From positions 124,001-188,000 of the forward strand of contig NIVC01000181.1 in NCBI GenBank assembly GCA_002269645.1: a stretch of DNA of 64,000 nucleotides. The letters run 5' to 3'. Source of the DNA: Macrostomum lignano. Lineage: Eukaryota. Position numbers and translations under genes: made by a program. Positions 43,996 to 61,560 of this stretch are shown here, one piece after another. How positions within the stretch are numbered: the first letter of the stretch is position 1; every line of letters starts with the position of its first letter. The notes under the pieces are model-generated. The model did no database searches. It worked only from the letters and a program-made list of their open reading frames with translations, and was not told where the DNA came from.

Positions 43996-44009
43996 GTTAC
44001 CATGGCAAC
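43996..44009. promoter_or_regulatory. RFX X-box overlapping the DHCR7 ATG
   Basis: GTTACCATGGCAAC. Confidence 0.55.
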
Positions 44010-45335
44010 CAAACAGTTGAAACAAGCGGAAGGACCTTTGGTGCAATTTATCAACCGAACAGTCATACCGCTGCTGCTCATCCTGCTGGTTCCGCAGTCG
44101 GTGATGTACCTGTGGTACGCTTCAGTCCACTGTCAGGGCAGCCTGACCGAACTGGCAGATCGTCTGACCAATCGGGGTGGACCCGCGCTGGTCTGGGCGG
44201 CGGTGAGCGTCGCCAACCCGGCTGTCTACGCTGCCATCCTCGCCTTCTGCGCCTTCCAGGTGCTGCTGATGCTGCTGGTGCCGGGTAGGACCTGCTACGG
44301 CACCGAGACGCCCACAGGTCACGTGCCCGAGTACAAAGACAACGGATTCGCGTGCTACCTCATCACCATGGCAACGTTCCTAGCTGGCACGGTCTATCTG
44401 AAGCAGCGCGGCCTGACTCCGACAGTGATTTATGATTATTACGGCGACTTTCTGGCCTCCATGATTCTGCTGAGCTTGGCCTTCTGCTTGCTCCTGTGCG
44501 TCAAAGGCGTCCTGGCGCCGACATCGACTGATCACGGTCGGAGCGGCAACTACCTGTTCGACTATTACTGGGGCACCGAGCTCTACCCCAGAATATGCGG
44601 CATCGACATCAAGGTGTTCACCAACTGCCGCTTCGGTCTGACAGTCTGGGCCCTGGCTGTCGCTGTGTTCGCCTTGAAAAGCTACGAGTTGCACGGTCGA
44701 GTAGTTGACGGCATGGCGGTCACCGCAGCGCTGCAGCTGCTCTACCTCACCAAGTTCTTCTGGTGGGAGGCTGGCTATTATCGAACAATCGACATCATCA
44801 CCGACAGAGCCGGATTCTACATCTGCTGGGGCTGTCTGTGCTTCGTGCCGAGTTTCTACACCCTGGTGAGTCTGTTCATGGTGCGCCAGCCGGAGCCGGT
44901 GGGACCCGCGTGGACAGCCGCCCTGCTGGGCTTCGGTCTGGCCAGCCTGGCCGTCAACTACTGGAGCGATTGGCAAAAGCAGGCGGCCAGAGCCGCGGAC
45001 GGTCAGCTGAACATCTGGGGCCGGCCGGCGCGGGTGATCAGAGCCAAGTACAGCCTGGACAATGGCCAGGAGCGCCAGTCTGTACTGCTTGCAAGCGGAT
45101 TCTGGGCGGTGTCCCGGCATTTCCACTACATCCCGGAGCTCAGCCTGACCCTGTGCTGGTCAGCTGTGTGCGGAACTGGCTGCCACATCATCCCCTACAT
45201 GTACTTCGCGTTCCTCAGCGTACTGCTGTTCCATCGAAGCTTCCGCGACGATAAGAAATGCCGGGACAAGTACGGAAGTACTGGTCCGAGTACTGCAAAC
45301 TGGTGCCGTACAAGATTGTGCCGCTCCTGTTCTGA
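44002..45335 (+). CDS. DHCR7: Sterol delta-7 reductase (ERG4/ERG24 family, DWF5-type), intronless; apparent 1-nt frameshift at ~45276
   Basis: Motifs GTELYPRI, DIKVFTNCRFG, TKFFWWEAGY, DRAGFYICWGCL, SGFWAVSRHFHYIPE, RDDKKCRDKYG. Restoring one A gives the canonical end KYWSEYCKLVPYKIVPLLF* (TGA 45333-45335). Confidence 0.92.
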
Positions 45336-45979
45336 TTCCCTGCAATTCACGGCCAGCTGAAGCAGAAGGACGCTGCAGTCGGCTTTCTTAGAAATACGAC
45401 AAATACTTCAGTTGCTCGTTATGCAACCTTTCGTTATTAACTGATTTCATCTTGACTGTTTAACTAATGGCTTCTTCTTATCGAAAATATAGCGTTCTTA
45501 GTCCCAAAATAGTGAACTTTAAATGCGGCATGTTTTTTGTCGGTTTGTTACATTAGATTTTACACTACTAACAGTAGCTCAAGCGAAAAATGGTTGAAAA
45601 TGTTTTTTTTTAAACGGAAGTAACTGAAAGTAACTGAAATGCTTTTTTAAAAAAACTGTCACAGATAAACAGGAAAACGAGTTGATTTGCTAGCAGATCT
45701 GGGGGCTGCTAATTGGATTTTTTCTGCTTGCCTGGCCATCTCCTTTTCGCTGATGTCCTTTCCTGTCTGCGTCCGGGCCTGTCTTTTGCGCAAGGCCGAA
45801 CAGCAAGCCAAGAAGTCAATATCCGCCGCTGCCCAGTATTTACTAGAAATCCCTGTATATTCAATGTCAAAGTTAATTGAGCTCTGCCGAGAGAACCTCA
45901 ACACAATTTCTCCCAGCTGATTAGTTTCTACGGTAGCTCAGAGCAGGGTGAACCGGAGCTCATGATTCAAGAGTAGTTG

Positions 45980-46508
45980 CTGGGCAGTGAGCTCTCGCTA
46001 TGGGGTCAGCAACTGGGCAGTGAGCTCTCGCTATGGGGTCAGCAACTGGGCAGTGAGCTCTCGCTATGGGGTCAGCAACTGGGCAGTGAGCTCTCGCTAT
46101 GGGGTCAGCAACTGGGCAGTGAGCTCTCGCTATGGGGTCAGCAACTGGGCATTGAACTCTCTCGCTATGGGGTCAGCAACTGGGCATTGAACTCTCTCGC
46201 TATGGGGTCAGCAACTGGGCAGTGAGCTCTCTCGCTATGGGGTCAGCAACTGGGCAGTGAGCTCTCTCGCTATGGGGTCAGCAACTGGGCAGTGAGCTCT
46301 CTCGCTATGGGGTCAGCAACTGGGCAGTGAGCTCTCTCGCTATGGGGTCAGCAACTGGGCAGTGAGCTCTCTCGCTATGGGGTCAGCAACTGGGCAGTGA
46401 GCTCTCGCTATGGGGTCAGCAACTGGGCAGTGAGCTTTCGCTATGGGGTCAGCAACTGGGCAGTGAGCTCTCTCGCTATGGGGTCAGCAACTGGGCAGTG
46501 AGCTCTCG
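45980..46508. repeat. Minisatellite, 33/35-bp unit (CTGGGCAGTGAGCTCTCGCTATGGGGTCAGCAA)
   Basis: About 15 copies ending at a CAG directly before the ATG at 46512. Confidence 0.96.
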
Positions 46509-46712: not shown

Positions 46713-49700
46713 ATGTACGGCATCCTACTTGAAGGAGTCCAGCACTATCTTGAGCACACCTATGGTGCTCAGGCTTGGGCAAAAATTCGTGAACTAGCCG
46801 AGTGTCGGCATCCCACATTCGAGACTCGACGCGGCTACAATGAGCATCTGCTGATGCAGCTTTTTGAGGCCGCATCCAGCCTCACTGGCCTGACAGTCGA
46901 TCAGCTGACATTTGAGAACGGCTGCTTCTTTGTCGGCTACCTGGCCAAGTACGGCTACGATAAAGTGCTGCGGGTCATGGGCCGCCACCTCAGGGACTTC
47001 TACCACGGCATTGACAATCTGCACGAGCACCTGCGCTTTTCATATCCGCGAATCCGACCGCCCACCTTCATTGTGGCCGACGAGAGTCCCACCGGTGCGG
47101 AGCGGGGTGGCTTGTAGCCTTCTAAACTCGACTGGCGCCTCTCTGTGTCTCACCTGGCGCTTATTTGTGTCTCACCTGTTCTGTCTCTGTGTCTCACCTG
47201 GCGCTTATTTGTGTCTCACCTGTTCTCTCTCTGTGTCTCACCTGGCGCTTATTTGTGTCTCACCTGTTCTCTCTCTGTGTCTCACCTGGCGCTTATTTGT
47301 GTCTCACCTGTTCTCTTTCTGTGTCTCACCTGTTCTCTCTCTGTGTCTCACCTGTTCTCTCTCTGTGTCTCACCTGTTCTCTTTCTGTGTCTCACCTGTT
47401 CTCTCTCTGTGTCTCACCTAACGCTTACCTGTGTCTCACCTGTTCTCTCTTTGTGTCTCACCTGGCGCTTATTTGTGTCTCACCTGTTATCTATCTGCGT
47501 CTCACCTGTTCTCTATCTGCTTCTCACCTGTTCTCTAATCTGCGTCTCACATGTTCTCTCTCTGTGTCTCACCTGTTCTCTCTCTATCTCAACTGGCGCT
47601 TATTTGTGTCTCACCTGTTCTCTCTCTGTGTCTCACCTGGCGCTTATTTGTGTCTCACCTGTTCTCTCTCTGTGTCTCACCTGTTCTCTCTTTGTGTCTC
47701 ACCTGGCGCTTATTTGTGTCTCACCTGTTATCTATCTGCGTCTCACCTGTTCTCTATCTGCTTCTCACCTGTTCTCTAATCTGCGTCTCACATGTTCTCT
47801 CTCTGTGTCTCACCTGTTCTCTCTCTATCTCAACTGGCGCTTATTTGTGTCTCACCTGTTCTCTCTCTGTGTCTCACCTGGCGCTTATTTGTGTCTCACC
47901 TGTTCTCTCTCTGTGTCTCACCTGTTCTCTCTTTGTGTCTCACCTGGCGCTTATTTGTGTCTCACCTGTTATCTACCTGCGTCTCACCTGTTCTCTATCT
48001 GCTTCTCACCTGTTCTCTAATCTGCGTCTCACATGTTCTCTCTCTGTGTCTCACCTGTTCTCTCTCTATCTCAACTGACGCTTATTTGTGTCTCACCTGT
48101 TCTCTCTCTGTGTCTCACCTGTTCTCTCTCTGTGTCTCACCTGTTCTCTCTCTGTGTCTCACCTGTTCTCTCTCTGTGTCTCACCTGTTCTCTCTCTGTG
48201 TCTCACCTGTTCTCTCTCTGTGTCTCAACTGGCGCTTATTTGTGTCTCACCTGTTCTCTCTCTGTGTCTCACCTGGCGTCTCTCTGCATCTCACCTGGCG
48301 TCTCTCTGTGTGTCACCTTGCGTCTCACGGTGTCTCACCTGGCGCTTCTCTTTGTCTCACCTGGTGCCTATTAGTCTCACCTGGAAGTCTTATAATGAAG
48401 CCGTGACAATACTACAATACTTATCTGACCATCTGAAATTCCTCAAGGCCACTGCTACTCCAGTTGTCAATGGTCTCATCTGGGGGGGGACATGCCTGAC
48501 GATTAGAAAGTCAGAGGACCCGCTGTACACCCGAAGGTGCTGCAAGCCGCCTTGACGCCCCCGACACCATTCCAGGCATGCGGATTCTGTACAAGACTCG
48601 CCGGCCCGGCTTCCAGCACTACGCCCGGGGCCAGCTGTACACCATAGCCAGAGTTCTCTACCAGCTGGAGCTGGACATTGGCCTCGTCGACAGTAGCCAG
48701 CAGGGCGCCTACAGCCTGTACGTGTACGAGCTCAGATTCGATAACGTGGCCTACTCGGGCGAGCACAGCACCGCTTATCGAATCATCGATCCCGATTCTT
48801 ACGTTGTGCCCTACAGGGACTTCATCACCCTGTTCCCTTACTACCTGGCCTTGGACAGGAGCTTGACAGTCAGCGCTGCTGGCAGCGGGTTTGCCAACAT
48901 CCTTGGCGAGGCTGCTGACGGGGTCCACTTTGGCATCAACTTCATGTTGATCAGGCCCTTCATCGACTGCTGCTGGGATGAGGTGAGACAGGCTGGCTGA
49001 GTCTGAAGTCTCATATCTGAGTTTATCTCACATCTGAATCTCACCCAGTCTCATCTCTGAAATCTCAACCAGTCTCACATCTGGAATCTCACCCAGTCTC
49101 ACATCTGGAATCTCACCCAGTCTCACATCTGGAATCTCACCCAGTCTCACATCTGGAATCTCACTCAGTCTCATCTCTGAAATCTCAACCAGTCTCACAT
49201 CTGGAATCTCACCCAGTCTCACATCTGGAATCTCACCCAGTCTCACATCTGGAATCTCACCCAGTCTCACATCTGGAATCTCACCCAGTCTCACATCTGG
49301 AATCTCACTCAGTCTCATCTCTGAAATCTCAACCAGTCTCACATCTGGAATCTCACCCAGTCTCACATCTGGAATCTCACCCAGTCTCACATCTGAAATC
49401 TCACCCAGTCTCACATCTGAAATCTCACCCAATCTCACATCTGGAATCTCACCCAATCTCACATCTGAAATCTCGCCCAATCTCACATCTGGAATCTCAC
49501 CCAGTCTCACATCTGGAATCTCACCCAATCTCACATCTGAAATCTCGCCCAATCTCACATCTGGAATCTCACCCAGTCTCACATCTGAAAGTGAGACATC
49601 TGGCTGCCTCACCTTGAAGCGGCTTAGGCAGACTTATTTCTAATCGATATTTCAGCATTACATGTACACAGCTTCAGCCAATAAAAGCAGCCCCTCAATT

Positions 49701-52700
49701 GCCTACCAATCGCAGTTCCTCAAGCACCGGCACAACATATTCGAAATTGCCGCCTACAATCGAACAGTTTCGGCCGGCGGGAAAGCTCAGTGCGCCCCGC
49801 CGGACAGGGGACAAACCGGCGACAAGTCCGAGGACACCAGCTTGAGCCGCTCCGACGACTCAAAGCTTGTGCGGTTCAAGGGCCAGATGATCTACATGCC
49901 GACTTGGGACCGGCTGCTTTACATCTGCTCGCCTAGGTTGGCTGATAGTGTACTTTTATGCTGACTTTGTTGGATCTCGGATTGAGATTCCAGTCGTAGG
50001 ATTCAGATTCCAGTCGTAGGATTGAGATTTCAGTCGTAGGATTAAGATTCCAGTCGTAGGGTTGAGATTCCAGTTGTACGATTGAGATTCCAGTAGTAGT
50101 ATTGAGATTCCAGTCGTAGGGTTGAGATTCCAGTCGTAGGATTAAGATTCCAATCGTAGGATTAAGATTCCAGTCGTAAGATATAGATTCCAGTAGTTTG
50201 ATTGAGCTTCCAGTCGTAGGTTTGAAATTCCAGTCGTAGGTTTGAAATTCCAGTCGTAGGTTTGAGATTCCAGTCGTAGGTTTGAGATTCCAGTCGTAGG
50301 TTTGAGATTCCGGTCGTAGGTTTGAGATTCCAGTCGTAGGTTTGAGATTCCAGTCGTAGGTTTGAGATTCCAGTCGTAGGTTTGAGATTCCAGTCGTAGG
50401 TTTGAAATTCCAGTCGTAGGTTTGAAATTCCAGTGGTAGAATTCAGATTATAAAATCTTAAGAGCCTCCAAAACGAGTTGAGGAAGCCTAGTGTTGAGTC
50501 CTGTTTGTACTCGCAAGTTTTCTGTTTAATTTTCAGGCTGAAGAACACGCACGAAATGGCCCTTAAAAACATCTACCTGAACGACTTGAGTCTTCACGAT
50601 TGCAGCCGGGATTTGACTCTGGCAGGGGATCAGCAATCTGAGGAACTGTTTGAGCTGCTGAGACAGGTGAATAAAAATGGATTGGGCGTTGGTTGAGGTC
50701 ACAGATACTAGAATAGCTAGATGGGCCACTCAGGCACATATACTTAGTAAAACAGCTTTCTACTTTCAGTTCAGTAGCAAAGAAGAATACATAAGCTTGT
50801 TTTATAAAAATAAAGGCAACTGAAATGAATTTGATAAGTTTAGAAGCCCAAGCTAGCAGGCGTAAACAGCTTGCTAATTGGTTCAGCAATAATGTACATT
50901 AGCCAGTCCACTGAAATGTACAAGGCAGATTTAGGGTGGAAGTCCGAGAAAGGCAATAAAAATTGGGGCGGGGTGGGATAGTGTGGAAAGGCGCGGTCGG
51001 GGGGGGGGGGTTTAAGCTGGGGGTAAGAGCCAATAAATGAGCCTTGGCTTTAAAAGTACAATAAAATATTTTTGTTTAACTGACTACTGAACTGAAAGTA
51101 GCTTACACACAGATGTGCTGAGTGGCCCAACTAGTTATTCTAGTATCTGTGGTTTAGTTCGGTTAAAGTCAAAACTGGGGAGTCAGAAAATGTAGAAAAA
51201 AATTTGTTGTTTCAATTGGTAATTTTTTATACAATTTTTTATATTTCCGTTAAGTGGTCTCAAAAAAACATTTTTAAAGCACAAAATACACCTCTTAATA
51301 AATTTCCTACCCATTTGTTAATCTTTACTTTTACGGAACTGTACGGACGCAGAATCAGAAACTAAATAAAGTATTATAAAAATAAATGTTTTATACAAAC
51401 CCGTAAAAGTAGTTTTTATTTGAAAAAAATTAGGTAAATATTGCAATAGATATTTTTTAAATAAATATTAGGCTGGATTTTGTTAAACTGCTTACTTTGT
51501 TTACGTCGCGCCTGTTTGTGTTCTGAAATACTCTCGTTAATTTAGTTATCAGTTTCATGTTAATAAGTACTTTATTTATTATTGATGTTTGGCCTGGTTC
51601 TTTTTACGGATGTGAAATATCAGCAAACTTTTTTGGATTGAATTAAATATGAGATTTAGATATTGATTACTGACTTCTGTATTTCAAGCATTGCAAACGT
51701 CTAGCATCAATTTTCTGCTTATCTATCTAATTCATGAACAATAATCGATCGAGGATTCTAGATATATGCTTTATTTTATAAGCCACGGCTTATGAATAGG
51801 CAAATGACTCATGAGACTGAGGTTTAAATAATTTTACTGAATAGAATGACAAATAAAGGTGTCTATCAAGTTTTTTTATAAAATAGCTTTATCCACCCAC
51901 GCTCTTGTTTAACTATATTTTTGTTCTGAGGCATAATTTGTAGTCTAGTTCAGATTGCTATTTATATTTAACTGTCCGTGTCTTAGGCCTATTTTATTTT
52001 TTGCTAATGACGTAGTAATAAAAAATATAATGTAAATATAAATTTTTGTACAGCTTTACAGCTTAGAATTACTTCGAAACTGATATATGCTTTTTTACAA
52101 AAGCCATTAGGCCTTAGCTAAGTGATAATCTACCTTATGATTACTGATAATGATACTGTTTATTATAGCCATCACTATGCACTTTTAAGTATATATATAA
52201 TTTAAATTGCTAAATAATTAACAAGTAGCAAGTAAAACAGGTAATAACTTTTTTTAAACTTTAACTTTATAGTTTCATATAATTTGCAATGTAAAAAGCT
52301 ATATAAAATGTGACTTGCACTATTCTTTAAAATGTATAATTGCAATATGTTTTCATTTGCATTATTTGTTACATTTATTTCATTTAAAACTCACATTATG
52401 AGCTTTAAGAACTTAGAACATGTTAAAAGTTAAAAATGCAAAACCTGATATATTTGCTTTTTAAAAAATTAGAAAATAGCAATATTTTATTATATATTTT
52501 ATTGTTTACAAACTGGCTTTAAATGCCTAGCAGGAGTGTTTCCTTTTATACTATTGTATATTTAATATACCAATAAATTCTTAACTTGCTTTAGTAGAAG
52601 TTTTTTAGACTTAAATGTAAGTAAAATATGTTAAATGTTTTTCACTTTAATTCATGCCATGCCAGGACTTCTTTGGGAGATCTTCTCAGCTGCATTTTAT

Positions 52701-55700
52701 GATATGCCTTTCATTCTGAGCTCTAAACCTGAGGCCTTACTTAAACAATGAAACTGGTGGACTTGCTATATGTTACCTTTACATTTGGTTGAGTGAGTCT
52801 AGTGCTTTCTCCATGAACCAACCTGATCTGTCTGAGCAACCTGTTGCAATGTTGGCGACTCCTGCACCTAGCAGGCCACTTCTGCCCACAACTGGTTCAG
52901 GTGCTGCGCTGCTACTTTTGGATTCTGGCACCCAAGATTCTGGTGGCTATGTGGCCTACATTTTCTCTCAGACCACAAGACACACCTTTTTAGAACCTTA
53001 TGTTTTATAGTGTGTTTTATTGTATGGGCCTAGTGGCTATACCAAAAATCTTGTTTTGCATTTAAGTTAATAAAACTTCTGCTTCAGGAATTTATTACTT
53101 GTGCCTAAAAATTCTAAAACCTATTTCTGTTGCCTGTTCATCTTTTTCACTAAATCAAGAGGCATTAAGAGCTTCATTTAGAGCTCTGTGAGATTCACAT
53201 TTGTATTGAAACTGTTTGGATAGGATCATAACCATGCCCCCCACCCAGATATCTTTTTTACCCTTCTTGAGGTAGCCATATTGATTTTCTGTTCTGGTCT
53301 GTGCAGACTGCTCTATACGTCCATGGCCATAGATTAAAATATTTGAGCTGATGCTGCTTTATTAATAAAACTTTTTATTATCCGATCAATGTGTTTGGGA
53401 AGTCGTGTTTTAAATCGTAGGCTCGTTTACTCGTATATTTGTTGAAATTAAGCAAGAGCTCGTCAATCGTTTCGCGCTTGTTCCTGCAGTCTATCAATTG
53501 TGGGTCTGTAAGCCAAGCATATACCCATAAACTAATACGTGGCTGCTGGCAGCCACACATCACAGGTACATAGCTGGTTGAGCTTAAAAAGCACTTATTA
53601 GTTATATAAGGAGTATGCTATAGTAAAAATAAAAGCATCCTAGCTTTCAAAGCTAGAACATTACAACGCTACCACGCTGAAGAGGGCTCGTACTCTCATG
53701 CCAGAGCGAACGCAGAAAAGTCGATACAAAAGAGGCCAAATTGCAACGTAAAAGTGAAAATAAGGAAGCACATACTGCGCGTGTTCTCAAACTCTGCTCG
53801 AGCAGCTCAGATTGGCCCTGCTGAAACTGAAGTGCAGCATACTGCCAGACTGTGCTCAAAATCTGCTTGTGTCGAACAAAGCTGAGTGACAGAGTCCAAC
53901 TTGCAGCGATGCGCCAGACTGGATTCTGATCGACTACCCGCCGAACATAAGAGGTGGGGTTCTCTACAATGGTTGTCAATTATGTTGACACAAGTTGTTG
54001 CTGCGTGTAGCGATTTGTAGCGATTTTTATTTTCATTCCGTTTCCAAACAGCTGAAAGGTACATCTGTGGAGATGAACATTTTATTATTAGAGAGATAAT
54101 GAGTGAACACTTTGTCTGTATTTTTTGCTGTCTTCTTTCTATTCCAATAGGATTCTAGCACCATGCAGATTTCAAGATATTAAATTATGAGTTCCAAGTT
54201 ATTTAAGCATGATTACATAGTCTGTTACAATGCTATAACCTTCATGATGCCCCAAAATTATTGATCCTAGGTAAATCTGATGTCAGTTAAGCAGACCAAT
54301 GAATTTAAAGTAAATTTAAAGTCAATCAGACCTGATTATTTGGTGTTAGTAAGTGAAATCTGATTAATCTGGTGATCTTAGACTAGAATTGCTAGTCATA
54401 AAAAATTTTAAGTGATGGTCAATAAAAAGATGTTTAAAGTAATTTTTACAAAATTTACCTCAAATTATTCAGTATGAAATAAGCAGAATAACTATCATTT
54501 AAAATAAATAAAGCCTAATTCATTACAAAATATACATTAAATGGCAATAAAATTATATTAGGTTGTCCCTGCTGCAAAGCCAAAAAAATGCTTCTTTATA
54601 GGGTTCTTTGCAGTGCCTTGAGGAAATATCTAAGCTTTTCATTGTACATGCTCCACACAGTGGGCTTCCGGAGAAAAAAATCATGACAAAAACTAACATT
54701 TATGGCATTTAAGAGCCAACAAAGAGTACCATTTAGTAAAGAAAAAAAATGCTTCAAGCTTGATAGGTGTGTAATAACATATTTCAATTCTAAAAGCTGG
54801 CAATTATTCATTTTGATGCAACAGACTACTGGAGAAAATCACTTTGTGCTCTCTAACTATTAAAAAGTATTTTTATATTGTTATAGAATGGTTATACAAT
54901 AAGTAATATATTAGGCTTTTTCAATAAAAAGCATCGATTTTATGCTAAATTATTTTCTAAAATGTAAAAGTGAATAATCCAATTGGATACATCAATTTAG
55001 ATTAGTTTTTAACATATTCTCATATGAGCATATAGGTGGGATGTCATAATCAATGTTTACTACCAAAACGAAGAATATTCGAACTACAGTAAGGTTTATA
55101 CAAATAAAGCATTACTCATGCATGCATTTAATGCAAATTAACTTAAAACTTTCACCAACTACATTAATTCATACATTTTTAGCCCTTATTTGTAAATTAT
55201 ATAGAATTTTTTTCACACGTGTTCAACGTGGTTGAATTTCCGCCAAAAAAATTATCGCTGAAAAGGACATATTTTGTCTTTTAGAGGAGCGAAAAAGACT
55301 AATTTTACTTAGATTATAGTAAAATTATTTATAATTCACAGTTTAATGCAAGATTTAACCGGCCATACTCATTAGAAAACAGATACAATTTGGTATTACA
55401 AAGTTTGAATGGTGTAAACTCGCGATGCCCTCGTTTTGACTTTGCCCCAGTTATGGATGATTTATTAAATTTGAATTCCCGAATTCCTGTCTCCAGCAAC
55501 AAGAGCGGACCCGTCAGATGGAGCTGAGCATGCGGAAGCTGGACCGAGAGAGGAAGCGGGCGGACAGCCTTCTGTTTGAATGCCTGCCGAAGTCCGTGGC
55601 CAGGAAACTGCGGAAAGGACTCGATCCCATGACTACGATTAAGGTGCATTGCGCAGCCTGCTCAAAGCTCCCGTCTTCGAAACCACACGGACCTCAATGT

Positions 55701-58700
55701 TCCACTCACGTTAAATCAGCACTCGTAGGGGGGGGGGGGGTGCGGGCTTGACTTACTTGACTCAGCTGCAGGGGGCTCCGTGCATCCGGATGCAGCGAGA
55801 AGGCGTTGCCGCCCATTTCGCTAGCCCCTGGCGACCACGGGCAGCTGCGGTGTCGCGTAGGGAGATCCGGTGGTGCCGGTGTCCGCAGCGCGGTCCCCCT
55901 CCGGAGAGTCCAGGAGGTGGATTGTCGCTCGCCCGGTGGCCCTTAGGTAGTGGACGAGCTGGCAGAGATTCCCGGGCCTGAAAACGTCGGAGAGGTCCGG
56001 GTTGGTGCCGAGGTAGGTGAGCCTGTCTTGAGTAGGCGGGGCATTCACAGATAGTGTTCCGCATTCTCGACACCGGAGAGGCAGAAAGGGGATGCCTCAC
56101 TGCGGATTTTCCCCGGAGGTGGCGATGCCTGGCAAAACAGCCGTGACCCGAGAGGGCCATGGTCACCGCCCTGATGTCCCTGCGGTTGAGTCTAAGCAGG
56201 GCTCTGCGAGGTCAAAAATTTTGCGATAATTGCACCTGCAGAGCCTTGAAGACGATGACATGCAAATCTTTGGTTCTATCCGATCTGTCTCAATTAAATG
56301 CCCTCTCATACCTGAATCTTAAAAGTCTGATAAAATTATTTATCTAACTTCACAGAATGTGACGCTCTAATTACGGCAGGCACGAGAATGTCACAGACAA
56401 AAAGACACCGCCACATTTTTATGATGTTGATCTGACAGGTAGATTAATTGCCTTTGCAATGAAAAGTTCAGATCTCCTCAGACTTCAGTACTCTGTGGCA
56501 CTAGGCATATGTAGGTTCTCCCACCGAGACTTGATCCTTTGAGATTCTCCCATTGAGCCTTAATCCTCTGAGATTCTCCCATTGAGACTTGATCCTCTGA
56601 GATTCTCCCACCGAGATTTTATCCTTTGAGATTCTCCCACCGAGACTTGATCCTCTGAGATTCTCCCACCGAGATTTGATCCTTTGAGATTCTCCCATTG
56701 AGAATTGATCCTCTGAGATTCTCCCATTGAGACTTGATCCTCTGAGATTCTCCCATTGAGACTTGATCCTTTGAGATTCTCCCATTGAGACTTGATCCTC
56801 TGATATTCTCCCACCGAGACTTGATCCTTTGAGATTCTCCCATTGAGACTTGATCCTCTGAGATTCTCCCACCGAGATTTGATCCTTTGAGATTCTCCCA
56901 TTGAGAATTGATCCTCTGAGATTCTCCCATTGAGACTTGATCCTTTGAGATTCTCCCACCGAGACTTGATCCTCTGATATTCTCCCACCGAGATTTGATC
57001 CTTTGAGATTCTCCCATTGAGACTTGATCCTCTGATATTCTCCCATTGAGAATTGATCCTCTGAGATTCTCCCATTGAGACTTGATCCTCTGATATTCTC
57101 CCATTGAGACTTGATCCTCTGAGATTCTCCCATTGAAACTTGATCCTCTGAGATTCTCCCATTGAGACTTGATCCTCTGAGATTCTCCCATTGAGACTTG
57201 ATCCTTTGAGATTTTCCCATTGAGACTTGATCCTTTGAGATTCTCCCATTGAGACTTGATCCTCTGATATTCTCCCATTGAGACTTGATCCTCTGAGATT
57301 CTCCCATTGAGACTTGATCCTCTGAGATTCTCCCATTGAAACTTGATCCTCTGAGATTCTCCCATTGAGACTTGATCCTCTGAGATTCTCCCATTGAGAC
57401 TTGATCCTTTGAGATTTTCCCATTGAGACTTGATCCTTTGAGATTCTCCCATTGAGACTTGATCCTCTGATATTCTCCCATTGAGACTTGATCCTCTGAG
57501 ATTCTCCCATTGAGACTTGATCCTCTGAGATTCTCCCATTGAGACTTGATCCTCTGAGATTCACCACCAAGATTTGATCCCTGAAAATCTTCATAAAATC
57601 TGCTACAATCAACACCTGATCCATTATTCGAGCTAAACTTTAAATAAACAATTCTTTTCAGACGCACGAAAGCGTGAGCATCTGCTTCAGCAAAGTGGTC
57701 GACTTCCAGGAGATCTGCCGCCAGCTATCTGTGACCGACATTGTCAATCTGCTCAACACCATGTACACCAGGTTCGACATGCGACTCGAGAAGCACCAGG
57801 TGTACAAGGTAAGACTTCTTAATTTAGTATCCGAATGACGAAAACTGGACCGCATCATTGTGTCTCTGAATTAAGAAAACTGGACCGCATCATTGTGTCT
57901 CTGAATTAAGAAAACTGGACCGCATCATTGTGTCTCTGAATTAAGAAAACTGGACCGCATCATTGTGTCTCTGAATTAAGAAAACTGGACCGCATCATTG
58001 TGTCTCTGAATTAAGAAAACTGGACCGCATCATTGTGTCTCTGAATTAAGAAAACTGGACCGCATCATTGTGTCTCTGAATTAAGAAAACTGGACCGCAT
58101 CATTGTGTCTCTGAATTAAGAAAACTGGACCGCATCATTGTGTCTCTGAATCATGAAAACTGGACCGCATCATTGTGTCTCTGAATCATGAAAACTGGAC
58201 CGCATCATTGTGTCTCTGAATTAAGAAAACTGGACCGCATCATTGTGTCTCTGAATTAAGAAAACTGGACCGCATCATTGTGTCTCTGAATTAAGAAAAC
58301 TGGACCGCATCATTGTGTCTCTGAATTAAGAAAACTGGACCGCATCATTGTGTCTCTGAATCATGAAAACTGGACTTCATCATTGCATCCCCATCGCAAA
58401 CTCAACAGGTGGAAACCATCGGTGACTCGTACATGCTGATGTCGGGCGCGCCGCGGGCCACGCCTTACCACGCGGCGCACATCGCCGAGATGGCTCTGGA
58501 CATGCTGGCCGAGGCGCACCGGATTGTTCGGCCGTCCGGCGACTCCTCGCCGACCGGAGCGGCCGATACGGCCGCGGTCGAGCCGCTGCGCATTCAGGTG
58601 GGCTGTCACTCCGGCAGCATTGTGGCTGGCGTGGTCGGCCTGATGACGCCCCGTTACTGCCTGTTCGGCGACACGGTCAACGTGGCCTCCAGAATGATGA

Positions 58701-60699
58701 CCTGCGGCCGGCCGGACTCCGTGCACATCAGCGCCAGCTTCCAACGCTGCATCGACGACTTCCCGTACGAGGTTGAACAGAGGGAGCCGGTACACGTGAA
58801 GGGCAAGGGTCGTATGGTTACCTATTACCTGCTGGGCAGGTCCGGCAAGGTGAGCACGACTGTCTATAAAGGAATTAACTGAGTGACAGATGGATTAGCT
58901 GAGTGACAGATAGATTAACTGAGTGACAGATGGATTAGCTGATTGACAGATGGATTAGCTGAGTGACATATGGATTAGCTGAGTGACAGATAGATTAGCT
59001 GAGTGACAGATAGATTAGCTGAGTGACAGATGGATTAGCTGAGTGACAGATGGATTAGCTGAGTGACAGATGGATTAGCTGAGTGACAGATGGATTAGCT
59101 GAGTGACAGATAGATTAGCTGAGTGACAGATGGATTAGCTGAGTGACAGATAGATTAAGTGAGTGACAGATGGATTAGCTGAGTGACAGATGGATTAGCT
59201 GAGTGACATATGGATTAGCTGAGTGACATATGGATTAGCTGAGTGACAGATGGATTAGCTGAGTGACAGATGGATTAGCTGAGTGACGGATGGATTAGCT
59301 GAGTGACGGATGGATTAGCTGAGTGACAGATGGATTAGCTGAGTGACCCCAAGGACGAACGCGCACTCCACCTTCAGTCGAACCTGGAGTACCAGCAGCT
59401 GACGGAGTGGCTGGATATCGACCGCAACAAGCTGGACGAGAGCTCGGACGAGAACACGGACAACACGACCACGGCCTCGGCCAGTCAGACTCTGCAGCGA
59501 ATTTGCCGAGAGGTGGCCGCCGCGGGCGATTCGGACAGCGACTCGGACGCGGAGGCGGCCACGCTCAGCTGCAGTGGCCGAACGGGCAGCCGGTGCCGCC
59601 ACCTGCTGCGGCCGCCGGTCAGCGACATCCGGGGACCTCGCCGACTGTGCCGCCGACATCGCCGGAGCAGGAGCTTTCAGACTGGCGACGTCGGCGGCAG
59701 GGCCTCCTCCGTGTCGATTTCCATTCCAGGAGTCCTAGACGATTCGTCGTCCTCGTCAGCCGAGGACGTCAGCCGGTGCCAGTCCGAAGGCGGTGGCATC
59801 GGAGGCGGCAGCAGCGGCACCCTGACGGAGATCAAAAGCATCTGCAGCGACGAGCAGAACCCAGACTTTGCTGATGAAGCCGAAGCAGCTGTGGCGGAAG
59901 AGGCTGCGGCAAGTGGTGGTGCAAAGCAAGTGAAGTTTCATCTTTCATCGACGCTGCCGCCGCCTCCTCAGCCTCCATCATCGGCAACGACACCGTCATC
60001 TTCTTTGCTGTTGATGTCGCGCAGTTTTCCGCGCCGACTGCGCCGAGCGGAAGCGGCCAGACCGCTGCTTGTGCAGCCGGAAGCGCCGCCTCAGGCCGCC
60101 GCCGCAGCCGTGGACATGCGCTACCGCAGCTTCCCGTGGGAGCTCAGAGCCGTGGGTGAGTGGGAAATGCTGTTTGATAAAGCTCAGCTTCCTTATTCTA
60201 CTGAATCTTATAGAGAACGCAAGGGAGGGCTCAATACTCGTTTGCAGTTGGAGACGAGTAAAAAGACTGCAAGGGTGAGAGGGAGTAGGGAAGGGTGAGA
60301 GGGAGCTTGGGGAAGAGTGGGAGGGAGACGGGAAGAGTGAGAGGGAGAGGGGAAGAGTGAGAAGGAGTGAGGCTGGATTAGCGAAGGAGAAGGGGCAGCT
60401 TAGCTAGTAAAAATGAGATAGACAGTTTGAGACGGAGATAAAGACATCGAGAGCACAGTAGTAAACTTGAAAAGTTCATCCTACTCATTGACTATCGCAG
60501 ATAGACTATTTCTATAGTAAAAGCTGCAACAACCTCACTCCCCACTGCAGCCAAGGCCCTGTCTCTGGGCGTAGCCGAGGTGGCCCTGCGCCGGCCCCGC
60601 GATCCAATTGAGTACCTGGCCCTGTGGCTGCGAGACTACCTGGCCAGGAACGGACTGGAAGGCTATGGCAACGGCGCTACAGAGGGAAATCAAAATTAA
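46713..60699 (+). CDS. Atypical soluble guanylate cyclase (H-NOX, HNOBA/PAS, coiled coil, cyclase) with C-terminal Dpy-30 motif, 933 aa; exons 46713-47094, 48576-48982, 49716-49936, 50537-50666, 55497-55643, 57662-57808, 58409-58849, 59378-60155, 60551-60699
   Basis: [13 protein letters not shown]; LGRH-like [24 protein letters not shown]; FKGQMIY; [13 protein letters not shown]; [13 protein letters not shown]; VYK|VETIGDSYM; [18 protein letters not shown]; VKGKGRM. All junctions are GT-AG and phase-consistent (2802 nt = 934 codons). Resembles the Drosophila Gyc-88E/89D class (from memory). A possible in-frame N-extension starts at 46512. Confidence 0.92.
47125..48385. repeat. Intronic composite minisatellite (22/24-bp units) with ~241-bp higher-order repeat
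   Basis: CTGTGTCTCACCTGTTCTCTCT / CTGTGTCTCACCTGGCGCTTATTT; identical variant blocks recur at 47551, 47792, 48033. Confidence 0.95.
49025..49590. repeat. Intronic minisatellite, 24-bp unit (TCTCACCCAGTCTCACATCTGGAA)
   Basis: sGC intron 2. Confidence 0.96.
49975..50445. repeat. Intronic minisatellite, 20-bp unit (GAGATTCCAGTCGTAGGWTT)
   Basis: sGC intron 3. Confidence 0.96.
50700..51151. mobile_element. MITE family copy 2 (same family as 35641-36089)
   Basis: Colinear with copy 1; same TIRs; GT dinucleotide on both flanks. Confidence 0.85.
55660..56215 (-). mobile_element. 5'-truncated, frameshifted non-LTR retrotransposon 3' end (I/LOA/R1-like ORF2 C-terminus)
   Basis: Across frames: [27 protein letters not shown]...[19 protein letters not shown]...DRLTYLG...[11 protein letters not shown], i.e. 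the CCHC knuckle region of LINE ORF2. Boundaries approximate. Confidence 0.75.
56515..57565. repeat. Intronic minisatellite, 29-bp unit (GAGATTCTCCCATTGAGACTTGATCCTCT)
   Basis: About 36 copies, sGC intron 5; the 29-aa periodicity of spurious ORFs confirms the unit. Confidence 0.97.
57838..58375. repeat. Intronic minisatellite, 35-bp unit (GAAAACTGGACCGCATCATTGTGTCTCTGAATTAA)
   Basis: About 15 near-identical head-to-tail copies filling almost the whole of sGC intron 6. Confidence 0.98.
58878..59347. repeat. Intronic minisatellite, 20-bp unit (GAGTGACAGATGGATTAGCT)
   Basis: About 23 copies filling almost the whole of sGC intron 7. Confidence 0.98.
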
Positions 60700-60827: not shown

Positions 60828-61560
60828 TTATAAGCTCTGAAATTCTACAAGCTCTGAAATTCTACAAGCTCTGAAATTCCACAAGCTCTGAAATTCTACA
60901 AGCTCTGAAATTCTGCAAGCTCTGAAATTCTGCAAGCTCTGAAATTCTACAAGCTCTGAAATTCCACAAGCTCTGAAATTCTACAAGCTCTGAAATTCTG
61001 CAAGCTCTGAAATTCTACAAGCTCTGAAATTCTACAAGCTCTGAAATTCTAAAAGCTCTGAAATTCTACAAGCTCTGAAATTCTACAAGCTCTGAAATTC
61101 CACAAGCTCTGAAATTCCACAAGCTCTGAAATTCTAAAAGCTCTGAAATTCTACAAGCTCTGAAATTCTACAAGCTCTGAAATTCCACAAGCTCTGAAAT
61201 TCCACAAGCTCTGAAATTCCACAAACTAGTAATTCAATAAGCTCTGAAATTCCACAAACTAGTAATTCAATAAGCTCTGGAATTCCACAAACTAGTAATT
61301 CAATAAGCTCTGAAATTCCACAAACTAGTAATTCCACAAGCTCTGAAATTCCACAAGCTCTGAAATTCTAAAAGCTCTGAAATTCTACAAGCTCTGAAAT
61401 TCTACAAGCTCTGAAATTCCACAAGCTCTGAAATTCCACAAACTAGTAATTCAATAAGCTCTGAAATTCCAAAAACTAGTAATTCAATAAGCTCTGGAAT
61501 TCCACAAACTAGTAATTCAACAAGCTCTGAAATTCCACAAACGAGTAATTTAACAATCTC
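60828..61560. repeat. Minisatellite, 17-bp unit (CAAGCTCTGAAATTCTA) with 33-bp variant
   Basis: Downstream of the sGC stop. Confidence 0.95.

Follow-up and report, generated by a model that had tools for sequence, protein, structure and literature searches.

A soluble guanylate cyclase ending in a Dpy-30 domain

We describe a gene of the flatworm Macrostomum lignano in which a soluble guanylate cyclase (sGC) of apparently haem-binding type is fused in frame to a C-terminal Dpy-30 dimerisation and docking (D/D) domain. The gene lies on the forward strand at positions 46713-60699 of the window, i.e. the 64,000 nucleotides from position 124,001 to 188,000 of contig NIVC01000181.1 (assembly GCA_002269645.1), and has nine exons and 933 codons. 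Its product reads HNOB, HNOBA/PAS, coiled coil, cyclase, a linker of about 255 amino acids and Dpy-30, in that order. We have very little doubt that the fusion is real and conserved; the fuller account, in which this nine-exon gene encodes a beta-like half of a cyclase whose conserved Dpy-30 tail acts as a docking module, plausibly ciliary, is the one we favour with moderate confidence.

The exon model was obtained by homology-guided splicing, in which tblastn with fluke sGC proteins, collinear with the forward strand from 46713 onwards, was combined with consensus GT-AG splice sites (Table 1). In the 933-amino acid product, which ends in ATEGNQN, Pfam recognises HNOB (residues 2-162, 140 bits), HNOBA (206-418, 173 bits), Guanylate_cyc (428-620, 191 bits) and Dpy-30 (884-912, 27.3 bits). 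From the collinearity, the intact reading frames and the existence of full-length fluke models, we infer that exons 1-4 and exons 5-9 form a single messenger RNA.

The junction between cyclase and tail

The borders of exon 8 (acceptor ...ccttcag/TCGAAC, donor CCGTGG/gtgagt, with the slash marking the splice site) and the acceptor of exon 9 (...cactgcag/CCAAGG) were read directly, and the two exons join in phase 1 (G/CC, encoding Ala). This bore out the exon coordinates, the 778-nucleotide exon, the phase-1 junction and the acceptor at 60551 given in a preliminary description of this DNA. The junctions named there (58849/59378 and 60155/60551) are both used in the deposited model BOX15_Mlig007736g1 (P0001, 546 amino acids; GCA_002269645.1, NIVC01000181.1), with which our spliced translation of 455 amino acids is 100% identical, both junctions included. 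As the M. lignano annotation was derived from RNA-seq via StringTie/TACO and the TBONE boundary pipeline and not ab initio (PMC5730564), the transcript support for these junctions is second-hand, through an RNA-seq-based model and not through the reads themselves.

The Dpy-30 exon could instead belong to a separate neighbouring gene for a DYDC homologue, joined to the cyclase only by mis-assembled transcripts, an outcome which the preliminary description had itself envisaged. It would fit such an artefact that the deposited model is imperfect and misses its 5' part, that an older model is chimeric and takes in the upstream gene, and that about 7% of assembled M. lignano transcripts are polycistronic precursors (PMC5730564). 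However, exon 9 contains no Met codon and has an in-frame stop 16 codons 5' of its acceptor, so that no separate gene could begin its coding sequence there, while helix 1 of the Dpy-30 domain as predicted by AlphaFold2 starts in exon 8 (at the Trp of WELRAV) and continues into exon 9, so that the domain straddles intron 8. The reading frame is also kept across the junction, whose splice sites follow the GT-AG consensus, and the same fusion is present in independently annotated fluke genomes. In the orthologous tail of Schistosoma turkestanicum a phase 1 intron is found at ...GAT TTA G/gtgagt...ttcag/CT CAA CCA, and the Ala codon which it splits (TTA G/gt...ag/CT CAA) corresponds in the alignment to the Ala codon divided by intron 8 in M. 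lignano (GTG G/gt...ag/CC AAG), hence the intron occupies the same codon and phase. The artefact is thus already largely refuted and can be regarded as essentially excluded, with a minimal residual probability. The missing Met codon, the upstream in-frame stop, the intron-split domain and the conserved intron position likewise led us to reject exon 9 as a small DYDC-like gene of its own.

Sequence and predicted fold of the tail

When the 62-amino acid tail was searched separately, the Pfam Dpy-30 family (PF05186) was matched with 32.3 bits (E 7.8e-8; gathering cut-off 22), compared to 27.3 bits in the full protein. With phmmer, the closest PDB sequences were DYDC1 (9fqr, E 6.4e-5), Chlamydomonas RSP2 (7jrj/7jtk, 2.2e-4) and DYDC2 (8j07 and 8wzb, 5e-4), whereas DPY30 itself was a weak match to the M. 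lignano tail (E 0.24); a profile of four flatworm tails reached 2e-6 against DYDC2. The tail shares the ...RP.DPIEYLA.WL..Y pattern with DYDC1/2 and RSP2, at about 50% identity over 33-36 residues. AlphaFold2 predicts a helix at residues 10-29, an RPRD turn and a second helix at 34-48, with a predicted confidence (pLDDT) above 90 in the core. Foldseek ranked the D/D domains of DYDC2 and RSP2 first and then those of DPY30 (root mean square deviation (rmsd) of 0.7-1.3 Å over 33-36 columns, probability 0.9-1.0), and since the E-values were all non-significant because the domain is so short, only the ranking and the rmsd were used, beside the sequence-based evidence. By sequence and predicted fold, the tail is a DYDC/RSP2-type Dpy-30 D/D domain fused in frame, as the preliminary description had proposed from the motif.

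The likeness is confined to the D/D motif of about 35 residues, outside which the flatworm cyclase has no resemblance to RSP2 or DYDC and does not belong to either family. The position also differs, as the Dpy-30 domain is N-terminal in RSP2 and DYDC, which belong to the spoke neck and bind RSP3, and is followed by spoke-specific sequence, whereas it forms the C-terminal extremity of an enzyme in the flatworm cyclase. The product of exon 8 that precedes it is of low complexity, as described earlier, and this Ser/Ala/Arg-rich linker of about 255 amino acids is presumably disordered.

Distribution of the fusion in flatworms and beyond

We searched the tail profile against 1.84 billion representative proteins (E ≤ 1e-3), an exhaustive search which superseded an earlier, uninformative word-indexed homologue search with the tail alignment (8 candidates and one fragment of 38 amino acids). 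From the 83 matches it is clear that the cyclase-bearing ones are all from flukes. These comprise proteins of Trichobilharzia regenti (P0010), Schistosoma rodhaini (P0124, 917 amino acids), S. spindale (P0129, 977 amino acids), Heterobilharzia americana (P0126 and P0127, 785 and 821 amino acids) and Opisthorchis viverrini (P0130, 918 amino acids), as well as fragments with the tail from S. mekongi, S. mattheei and Heterobilharzia. The other matches were short DYDC-like proteins and insect ankyrin + Dpy-30 proteins, the latter being the best non-cyclase matches (P0125 of Lamprigera, 50 bits; P0177 of Bacillus rossius). The flatworm survey covers the macrostomid and the flukes.

Pfam assigned the order HNOB-HNOBA-cyclase-Dpy-30 to the fluke proteins, with the Dpy-30 domain scoring 17.6-28.9 bits, and the schistosomatid sGCs fall into at least three paralogue groups, each with a distinct tail sequence. 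Some of the fluke models without a tail result from annotation splits: in Heterobilharzia, for instance, P0006 shares its contig with the fragment P0128, and both resemble S. spindale P0129. The S. japonicum model P0008 parts from its orthologues precisely where the intron lies. Since flukes have the same fusion, interrupted by an intron in the same codon and in the same phase, it arose before Macrostomorpha and Neodermata separated.

Outside the flatworms, a general Dpy-30 hidden Markov model built from the profile matches found no Dpy-30-like segment in any of 110 cyclase homologues. A CxxX (CaaX-like) end is present in 64 of these 110 beta2/88E-like homologues and in none of the flatworm members. 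On this comparison, the tail occupies the place of the prenylation signal in relatives from other phyla, which suggests that the change from CaaX to Dpy-30 was a lineage-wide swap of a C-terminal address signal.

The preliminary description knew of no Dpy-30 domain on an sGC, and this stands for the non-flatworm homologues surveyed and for the literature, but not for the databases, where the fluke proteins carry it in their paralogue groups. The architecture is thus already deposited, only as unnamed or 5'-incomplete models. No description of an sGC-Dpy-30 fusion was found in literature pairing Dpy-30 with guanylate cyclase, or sGC with DYDC or the radial spoke, and the supplements of a Cryptocotyle paper list sGCs with no mention of Dpy-30 (PMC10728431). 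Within this well-known family of enzymes, the fusion is a variant that has so far gone undescribed.

Start of the gene in deposited models

The deposited M. lignano model corresponds to residues 388-933 only. It starts at the internal ATG in exon 5 and therefore shows only the cyclase and Dpy-30 domains, leaving out the intact HNOB and HNOBA exons; the likely true start is at 46713 and not at the annotated 55518, and there is no annotation in the 10 kb upstream of the deposited model. An older UniProt model (A0A1I8JS72, P0205) is a chimera of the 7-dehydrocholesterol reductase gene at 44002-45360 with HNOB exons 1 and 2. As with the M. lignano model, the fluke models P0002, P0004, P0010 and P0204 begin near the homologous Met of the coiled coil, and such starts could reflect either fragmentation across a long intron or a genuine short isoform.

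Type of cyclase and the active site

Among solved structures the best match was human beta1 (6jt0_B; E 1.7e-91, aligned over residues 1-627), with no 88E/beta2-type chain among the matches listed. The proximal His is kept (H104, equivalent to H105 of human beta1), as is the haem-propionate motif Y-x-T-x-R (Y-K-T-R-R vs Y-S-E-R in beta1, with Thr for Ser). The best non-flatworm relatives in the databases are named 'soluble guanylate cyclase 88E-like', 'beta-2-like' or 'gcy-31', and those of the Gyc-88E/beta2 group share 35-39% identity over the N-terminal half; the class was assigned from the names of these best matches and not from a phylogenetic tree. Gyc-88E, GUCY1B2 (beta2) and GCY-31 to GCY-37 of Caenorhabditis elegans resemble the flatworm protein in the order HNOB-HNOBA-coiled coil-cyclase, in the proximal His, in the Y-x-S/T-x-R motif and in the beta-type residues of the guanosine triphosphate (GTP) site, and members of the Gyc-88E/beta2 group also have a long, variable C-terminal extension closing in a short localisation signal. 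They differ in that they keep the first metal-binding Asp and most of them have a CaaX-like end, whereas the flatworm clade has the Dpy-30 end and a Lys. From its residues and relatives, the subunit reads as a haem-bearing beta-like sGC of the atypical Gyc-88E/beta2-type group, in agreement with the atypical soluble guanylate cyclase of the preliminary description, both HNOB and HNOBA being present.

With regard to catalysis, the protein has the second metal-binding Asp and all four residues of the beta-type GTP site (E, C, N, R), while the position of the first metal-binding Asp is taken by Lys (K440; FSKVVDF vs FSDIVGF), so that the residue set for a homodimeric active site is incomplete. 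Human beta1 has Gly at this position, and the missing Asp is thus in keeping with a beta-like subunit. This Lys is found in 16/16 flatworm members examined (F-S/T-K-V/I-V/F-D/N-F; P0002-P0010, P0124-P0130 and P0204 among them), whereas every non-flatworm homologue caught by the same pattern has Asp (FSD...). Because Lys replaces the first metal Asp in all flatworm members while the beta-type GTP-binding residues stay, the subunit probably needs a partner for catalysis and would be the beta-like half of a heterodimer, not self-sufficient. On its own it is therefore unlikely to be the source of cyclic GMP (cGMP) that the preliminary description saw in it. No Asp-bearing partner subunit turned up in the homologue searches, none of which was aimed at one.

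Alternatively, the protein might be a pseudo-cyclase, a haem gas sensor which has lost the capacity to make cGMP in its cyclase domain and signals via a complex joined through Dpy-30. The uniform Lys in the flatworm members, where all pattern-matched homologues from elsewhere have Asp, agrees with this, as do the lack of an alpha-like partner in our searches and the fact that the Cryptocotyle study names beta-type subunits only (PMC10728431). Such a loss of activity is nevertheless quite unlikely: as in human beta1, the beta-type residues (E, C, N, R) are conserved together with the second metal Asp, and beta1 itself is fully functional in its heterodimer with Gly in the first Asp position; the cyclase domain score is on par with that of active enzymes (191 bits), which argues for purifying selection; the missing partner, moreover, comes from searches that were not specifically for an Asp-bearing subunit.

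A docking function for the tail

Dpy-30 domains are by definition dimerisation modules, and in solved complexes the Dpy-30 dimer sits on a helix of another protein. We propose that the Dpy-30 helix-turn-helix units of the two subunits of the cyclase dimer would come together as a four-helix bundle like those of DPY30, DYDC2/NME5 and RSP2/RSP23, and that the groove of this bundle would bind an amphipathic helix of a scaffold protein, placing the cyclase at a defined site. These steps are put forward because Dpy-30 domains act in this way in solved complexes (DPY30-ASH2L, DYDC2/NME5, RSP2/RSP23). The flexible linker would serve as a tether that gives the catalytic core some reach beyond the anchor, and the dimeric docking module would stand in for the prenyl anchor. 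By analogy with these systems, we consider a docking function for the tail somewhat better than an even bet.

Several known systems resemble this arrangement in part. NME5/RSP23 and AK7 have the same design of a nucleotide-acting catalytic domain with a Dpy-30 D/D domain, and both reside in the axoneme (NME5 was matched in the radial-spoke structures 8j07_X and 8wzb_E); their catalytic domains are nucleoside diphosphate kinase and adenylate kinase, respectively, whereas the flatworm protein has a class III cyclase. Normal levels of GCY-35 at URX endings and of GCY-9 and PDE-1 in BAG cilia require, in C. elegans, the scaffold ARCP-1 with its ankyrin repeats and DPY-30 domain (PMC6953435), which thus links DPY-30 to guanylate cyclase localisation at sensory endings and cilia, by a scaffold in trans compared to the flatworm fusion in cis. 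The insect ankyrin + Dpy-30 proteins found with the tail profile have an ARCP-1-like make-up. Prenylated sGCs of C. elegans are carried to dendritic endings by PDL-1, according to the account of Gross et al. 2014 cited in PMC6953435. The RII subunit of protein kinase A (PKA) and its A-kinase anchoring proteins (AKAPs) offer the same class of four-helix-bundle D/D domain, likewise binding an amphipathic helix and positioning a cyclic-nucleotide signalling enzyme; the PKA RII domain differs in being Pfam RIIa and not Dpy-30 and in anchoring the effector kinase and not the cyclase, and the RIIalpha-AKAP18 structure 4zp3_I was low in the Foldseek list for the tail.

The Dpy-30 domain might instead serve mainly to select which homo- or heterodimers the sGC paralogues form, or to stabilise some of them, in the manner of RSP2-RSP23 and with no anchoring to a scaffold. 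The distinct tails of the schistosomatid paralogue groups would fit this, Dpy-30 domains being dimerisers in any case, and partner choice should matter where all members are without the first metal Asp. However, structures from human and Manduca show that sGCs already dimerise via their PAS, coiled-coil and catalytic domains, and a flexible linker of some 255 residues is poorly suited to enforce pairing of the catalytic domains. All paralogues found share the Lys, so that pairing among them would not restore the Asp, and the binding of Dpy-30 dimers to another protein's helix in solved complexes also speaks for anchoring. We therefore regard a role confined to partner selection as unlikely and prefer the docking function.

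The most likely address of a docked cyclase would be the cilium, either the motile axoneme or a sensory ending. This is the leading guess because the closest D/D domains are those of radial-spoke proteins and because the Dpy-30 enzymes NME5/RSP23 and AK7 are axonemal; an axonemal address specifically is, by the same analogy, a tentative proposal that we hold to be more doubtful than the docking function itself. Beta-type sGCs are retained by flukes, which have no nitric oxide (NO) synthase; these sGCs are up-regulated in the cercariae, the free-swimming stage, and are expressed in ganglia, in neurons of the body and on the surface of the tail (PMC10728431). The anchoring to axonemal or AKAP scaffolds and the coupling of O2 or NO to ciliary beat put forward in the preliminary description are a reasonable inference from analogy, which must accommodate the missing metal Asp. 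A more specific and less probable version, which we offer as speculation, is that the tail finds its partner in a Dpy-30 protein already residing in the cilium (DYDC/RSP2, NME5/RSP23 or an ARCP-1-like ankyrin scaffold) or takes an RSP3-type amphipathic helix, so that a haem sensor and cGMP source would be built into the scaffold of the axoneme or sensory cilium. If so, oxygen or environmental NO would locally control ciliary beating or sensory transduction in flukes lacking NO synthase, and exchanging CaaX for Dpy-30 would have moved the pathway, throughout the lineage, from the membrane to the axoneme.

A number of points weigh against the account given here. The likeness to radial-spoke proteins, in a D/D motif of 30 residues, does not fix the binding partner; the PF05186 match spans only positions 10-38 of the 42 in the model; the Dpy-30 domain scores below the Pfam cut-off (13.6-20.4 bits) in fluke paralogue group A and in Opisthorchis; and the Foldseek E-values were all above 0.3. 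Retention of intron 8 would extend the frame by 48 codons to a stop at 60298 and give a tail-less isoform. At the other end of the protein, a homologue search with the N-terminal 478 amino acids showed that the HNOB exons and the Dpy-30 exon are not united in any public M. lignano model, and there may be a short isoform which starts in exon 5 and has no haem domain. A subunit with K440 may, on its own, make little or no cGMP. Finally, a literature search with the gene name Mlig007736 returned nothing on its expression in M. lignano.

Gene structure and genomic surroundings

The features of the gene are listed in Table 1. Intron 4 (50667-55496) is 4.8 kb long and AT-rich, with a GC content of about 0.36-0.38 compared to about 0.5 in the exons, and intron 5 contains a run of 13 G at about 55728-55740. 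Minisatellite arrays, each different, are found at 46000-46507, 47139-48383, 49026-49587, 49979-50449, 56516-57562, 57833-58385, 58874-59347 and 60832-61540, with units of 17-35 nucleotides, 15-56 copies and 79-98% matches; they occupy introns 1-3 and 5-7 and both flanks of the gene, whereas intron 8 has none. This load agrees with the reported 15% tandem-repeat content of the M. lignano genome, and the long minus-strand 'open reading frames', such as 56501-57667, are repeat artefacts. The upstream neighbour, at 44002-45360 on the forward strand, is an intact single-exon open reading frame of 452 codons which matches 7-dehydrocholesterol reductase, while the downstream neighbour lies on the opposite strand just past the 3' end of the window and encodes a BTB_2 protein (potassium-channel tetramerisation type) of 381 amino acids (L001 18837-21409, minus strand).

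Table 1. Exons of the M. lignano cyclase gene, and the intron that divides its Dpy-30 domain (window positions)
Feature	Positions	Strand	Content
Exon 1	46713-47094	+	ATG at 46713; HNOB haem domain, amino acids 1-127, including proximal His104; GT donor and frame checked
Exon 2	48576-48982	+	End of HNOB with Y-x-T-x-R haem-propionate motif; start of HNOBA/PAS
Exon 3	49716-49936	+	HNOBA
Exon 4	50537-50666	+	HNOBA
Exon 5	55497-55643	+	Coiled-coil region; internal ATG at 55518, the start of the GenBank model
Exon 6	57662-57808	+	First third of cyclase domain; K440 codon
Exon 7	58409-58849	+	Rest of cyclase catalytic domain (C-terminal two thirds); beta-type GTP-site E, C, N, R kept
Exon 8	59378-60155	+	778 nucleotides; Ser/Ala/Arg-rich linker of about 255 amino acids; last 7 or so codons (WELRAV + G) open Dpy-30 helix 1
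Intron 8	60156-60550	+	GT...AG, phase 1; splits Dpy-30 domain
Exon 9	60551-60699	+	Remaining Dpy-30 D/D domain, 17-amino acid tail, TAA at 60697-60699

Implications for flatworm cGMP signalling

The site at which cGMP is synthesised decides what it controls. The prenyl group of beta2, Gyc-88E-type enzymes and C. elegans GCYs is one known address label of sGCs and the PDZ ligand of sGC alpha2 another, and a fused D/D domain would be a third kind, a module of the type by which PKA is held on AKAPs and NME5/DYDC2 is positioned within radial spokes. As the fusion spans a free-living macrostomid, schistosomes and liver flukes, it is a lineage-wide trait of flatworm gas and cGMP signalling, in a clade that includes major human parasites which are without NO synthase and up-regulate their sGCs in the free-swimming, host-seeking stage (PMC10728431). 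Transgenesis works in M. lignano (PMC5730564), and the tail provides a handle for finding the partner to which the enzyme may be attached, while the clade-wide change from Asp to Lys raises the question of which subunit completes the active site.

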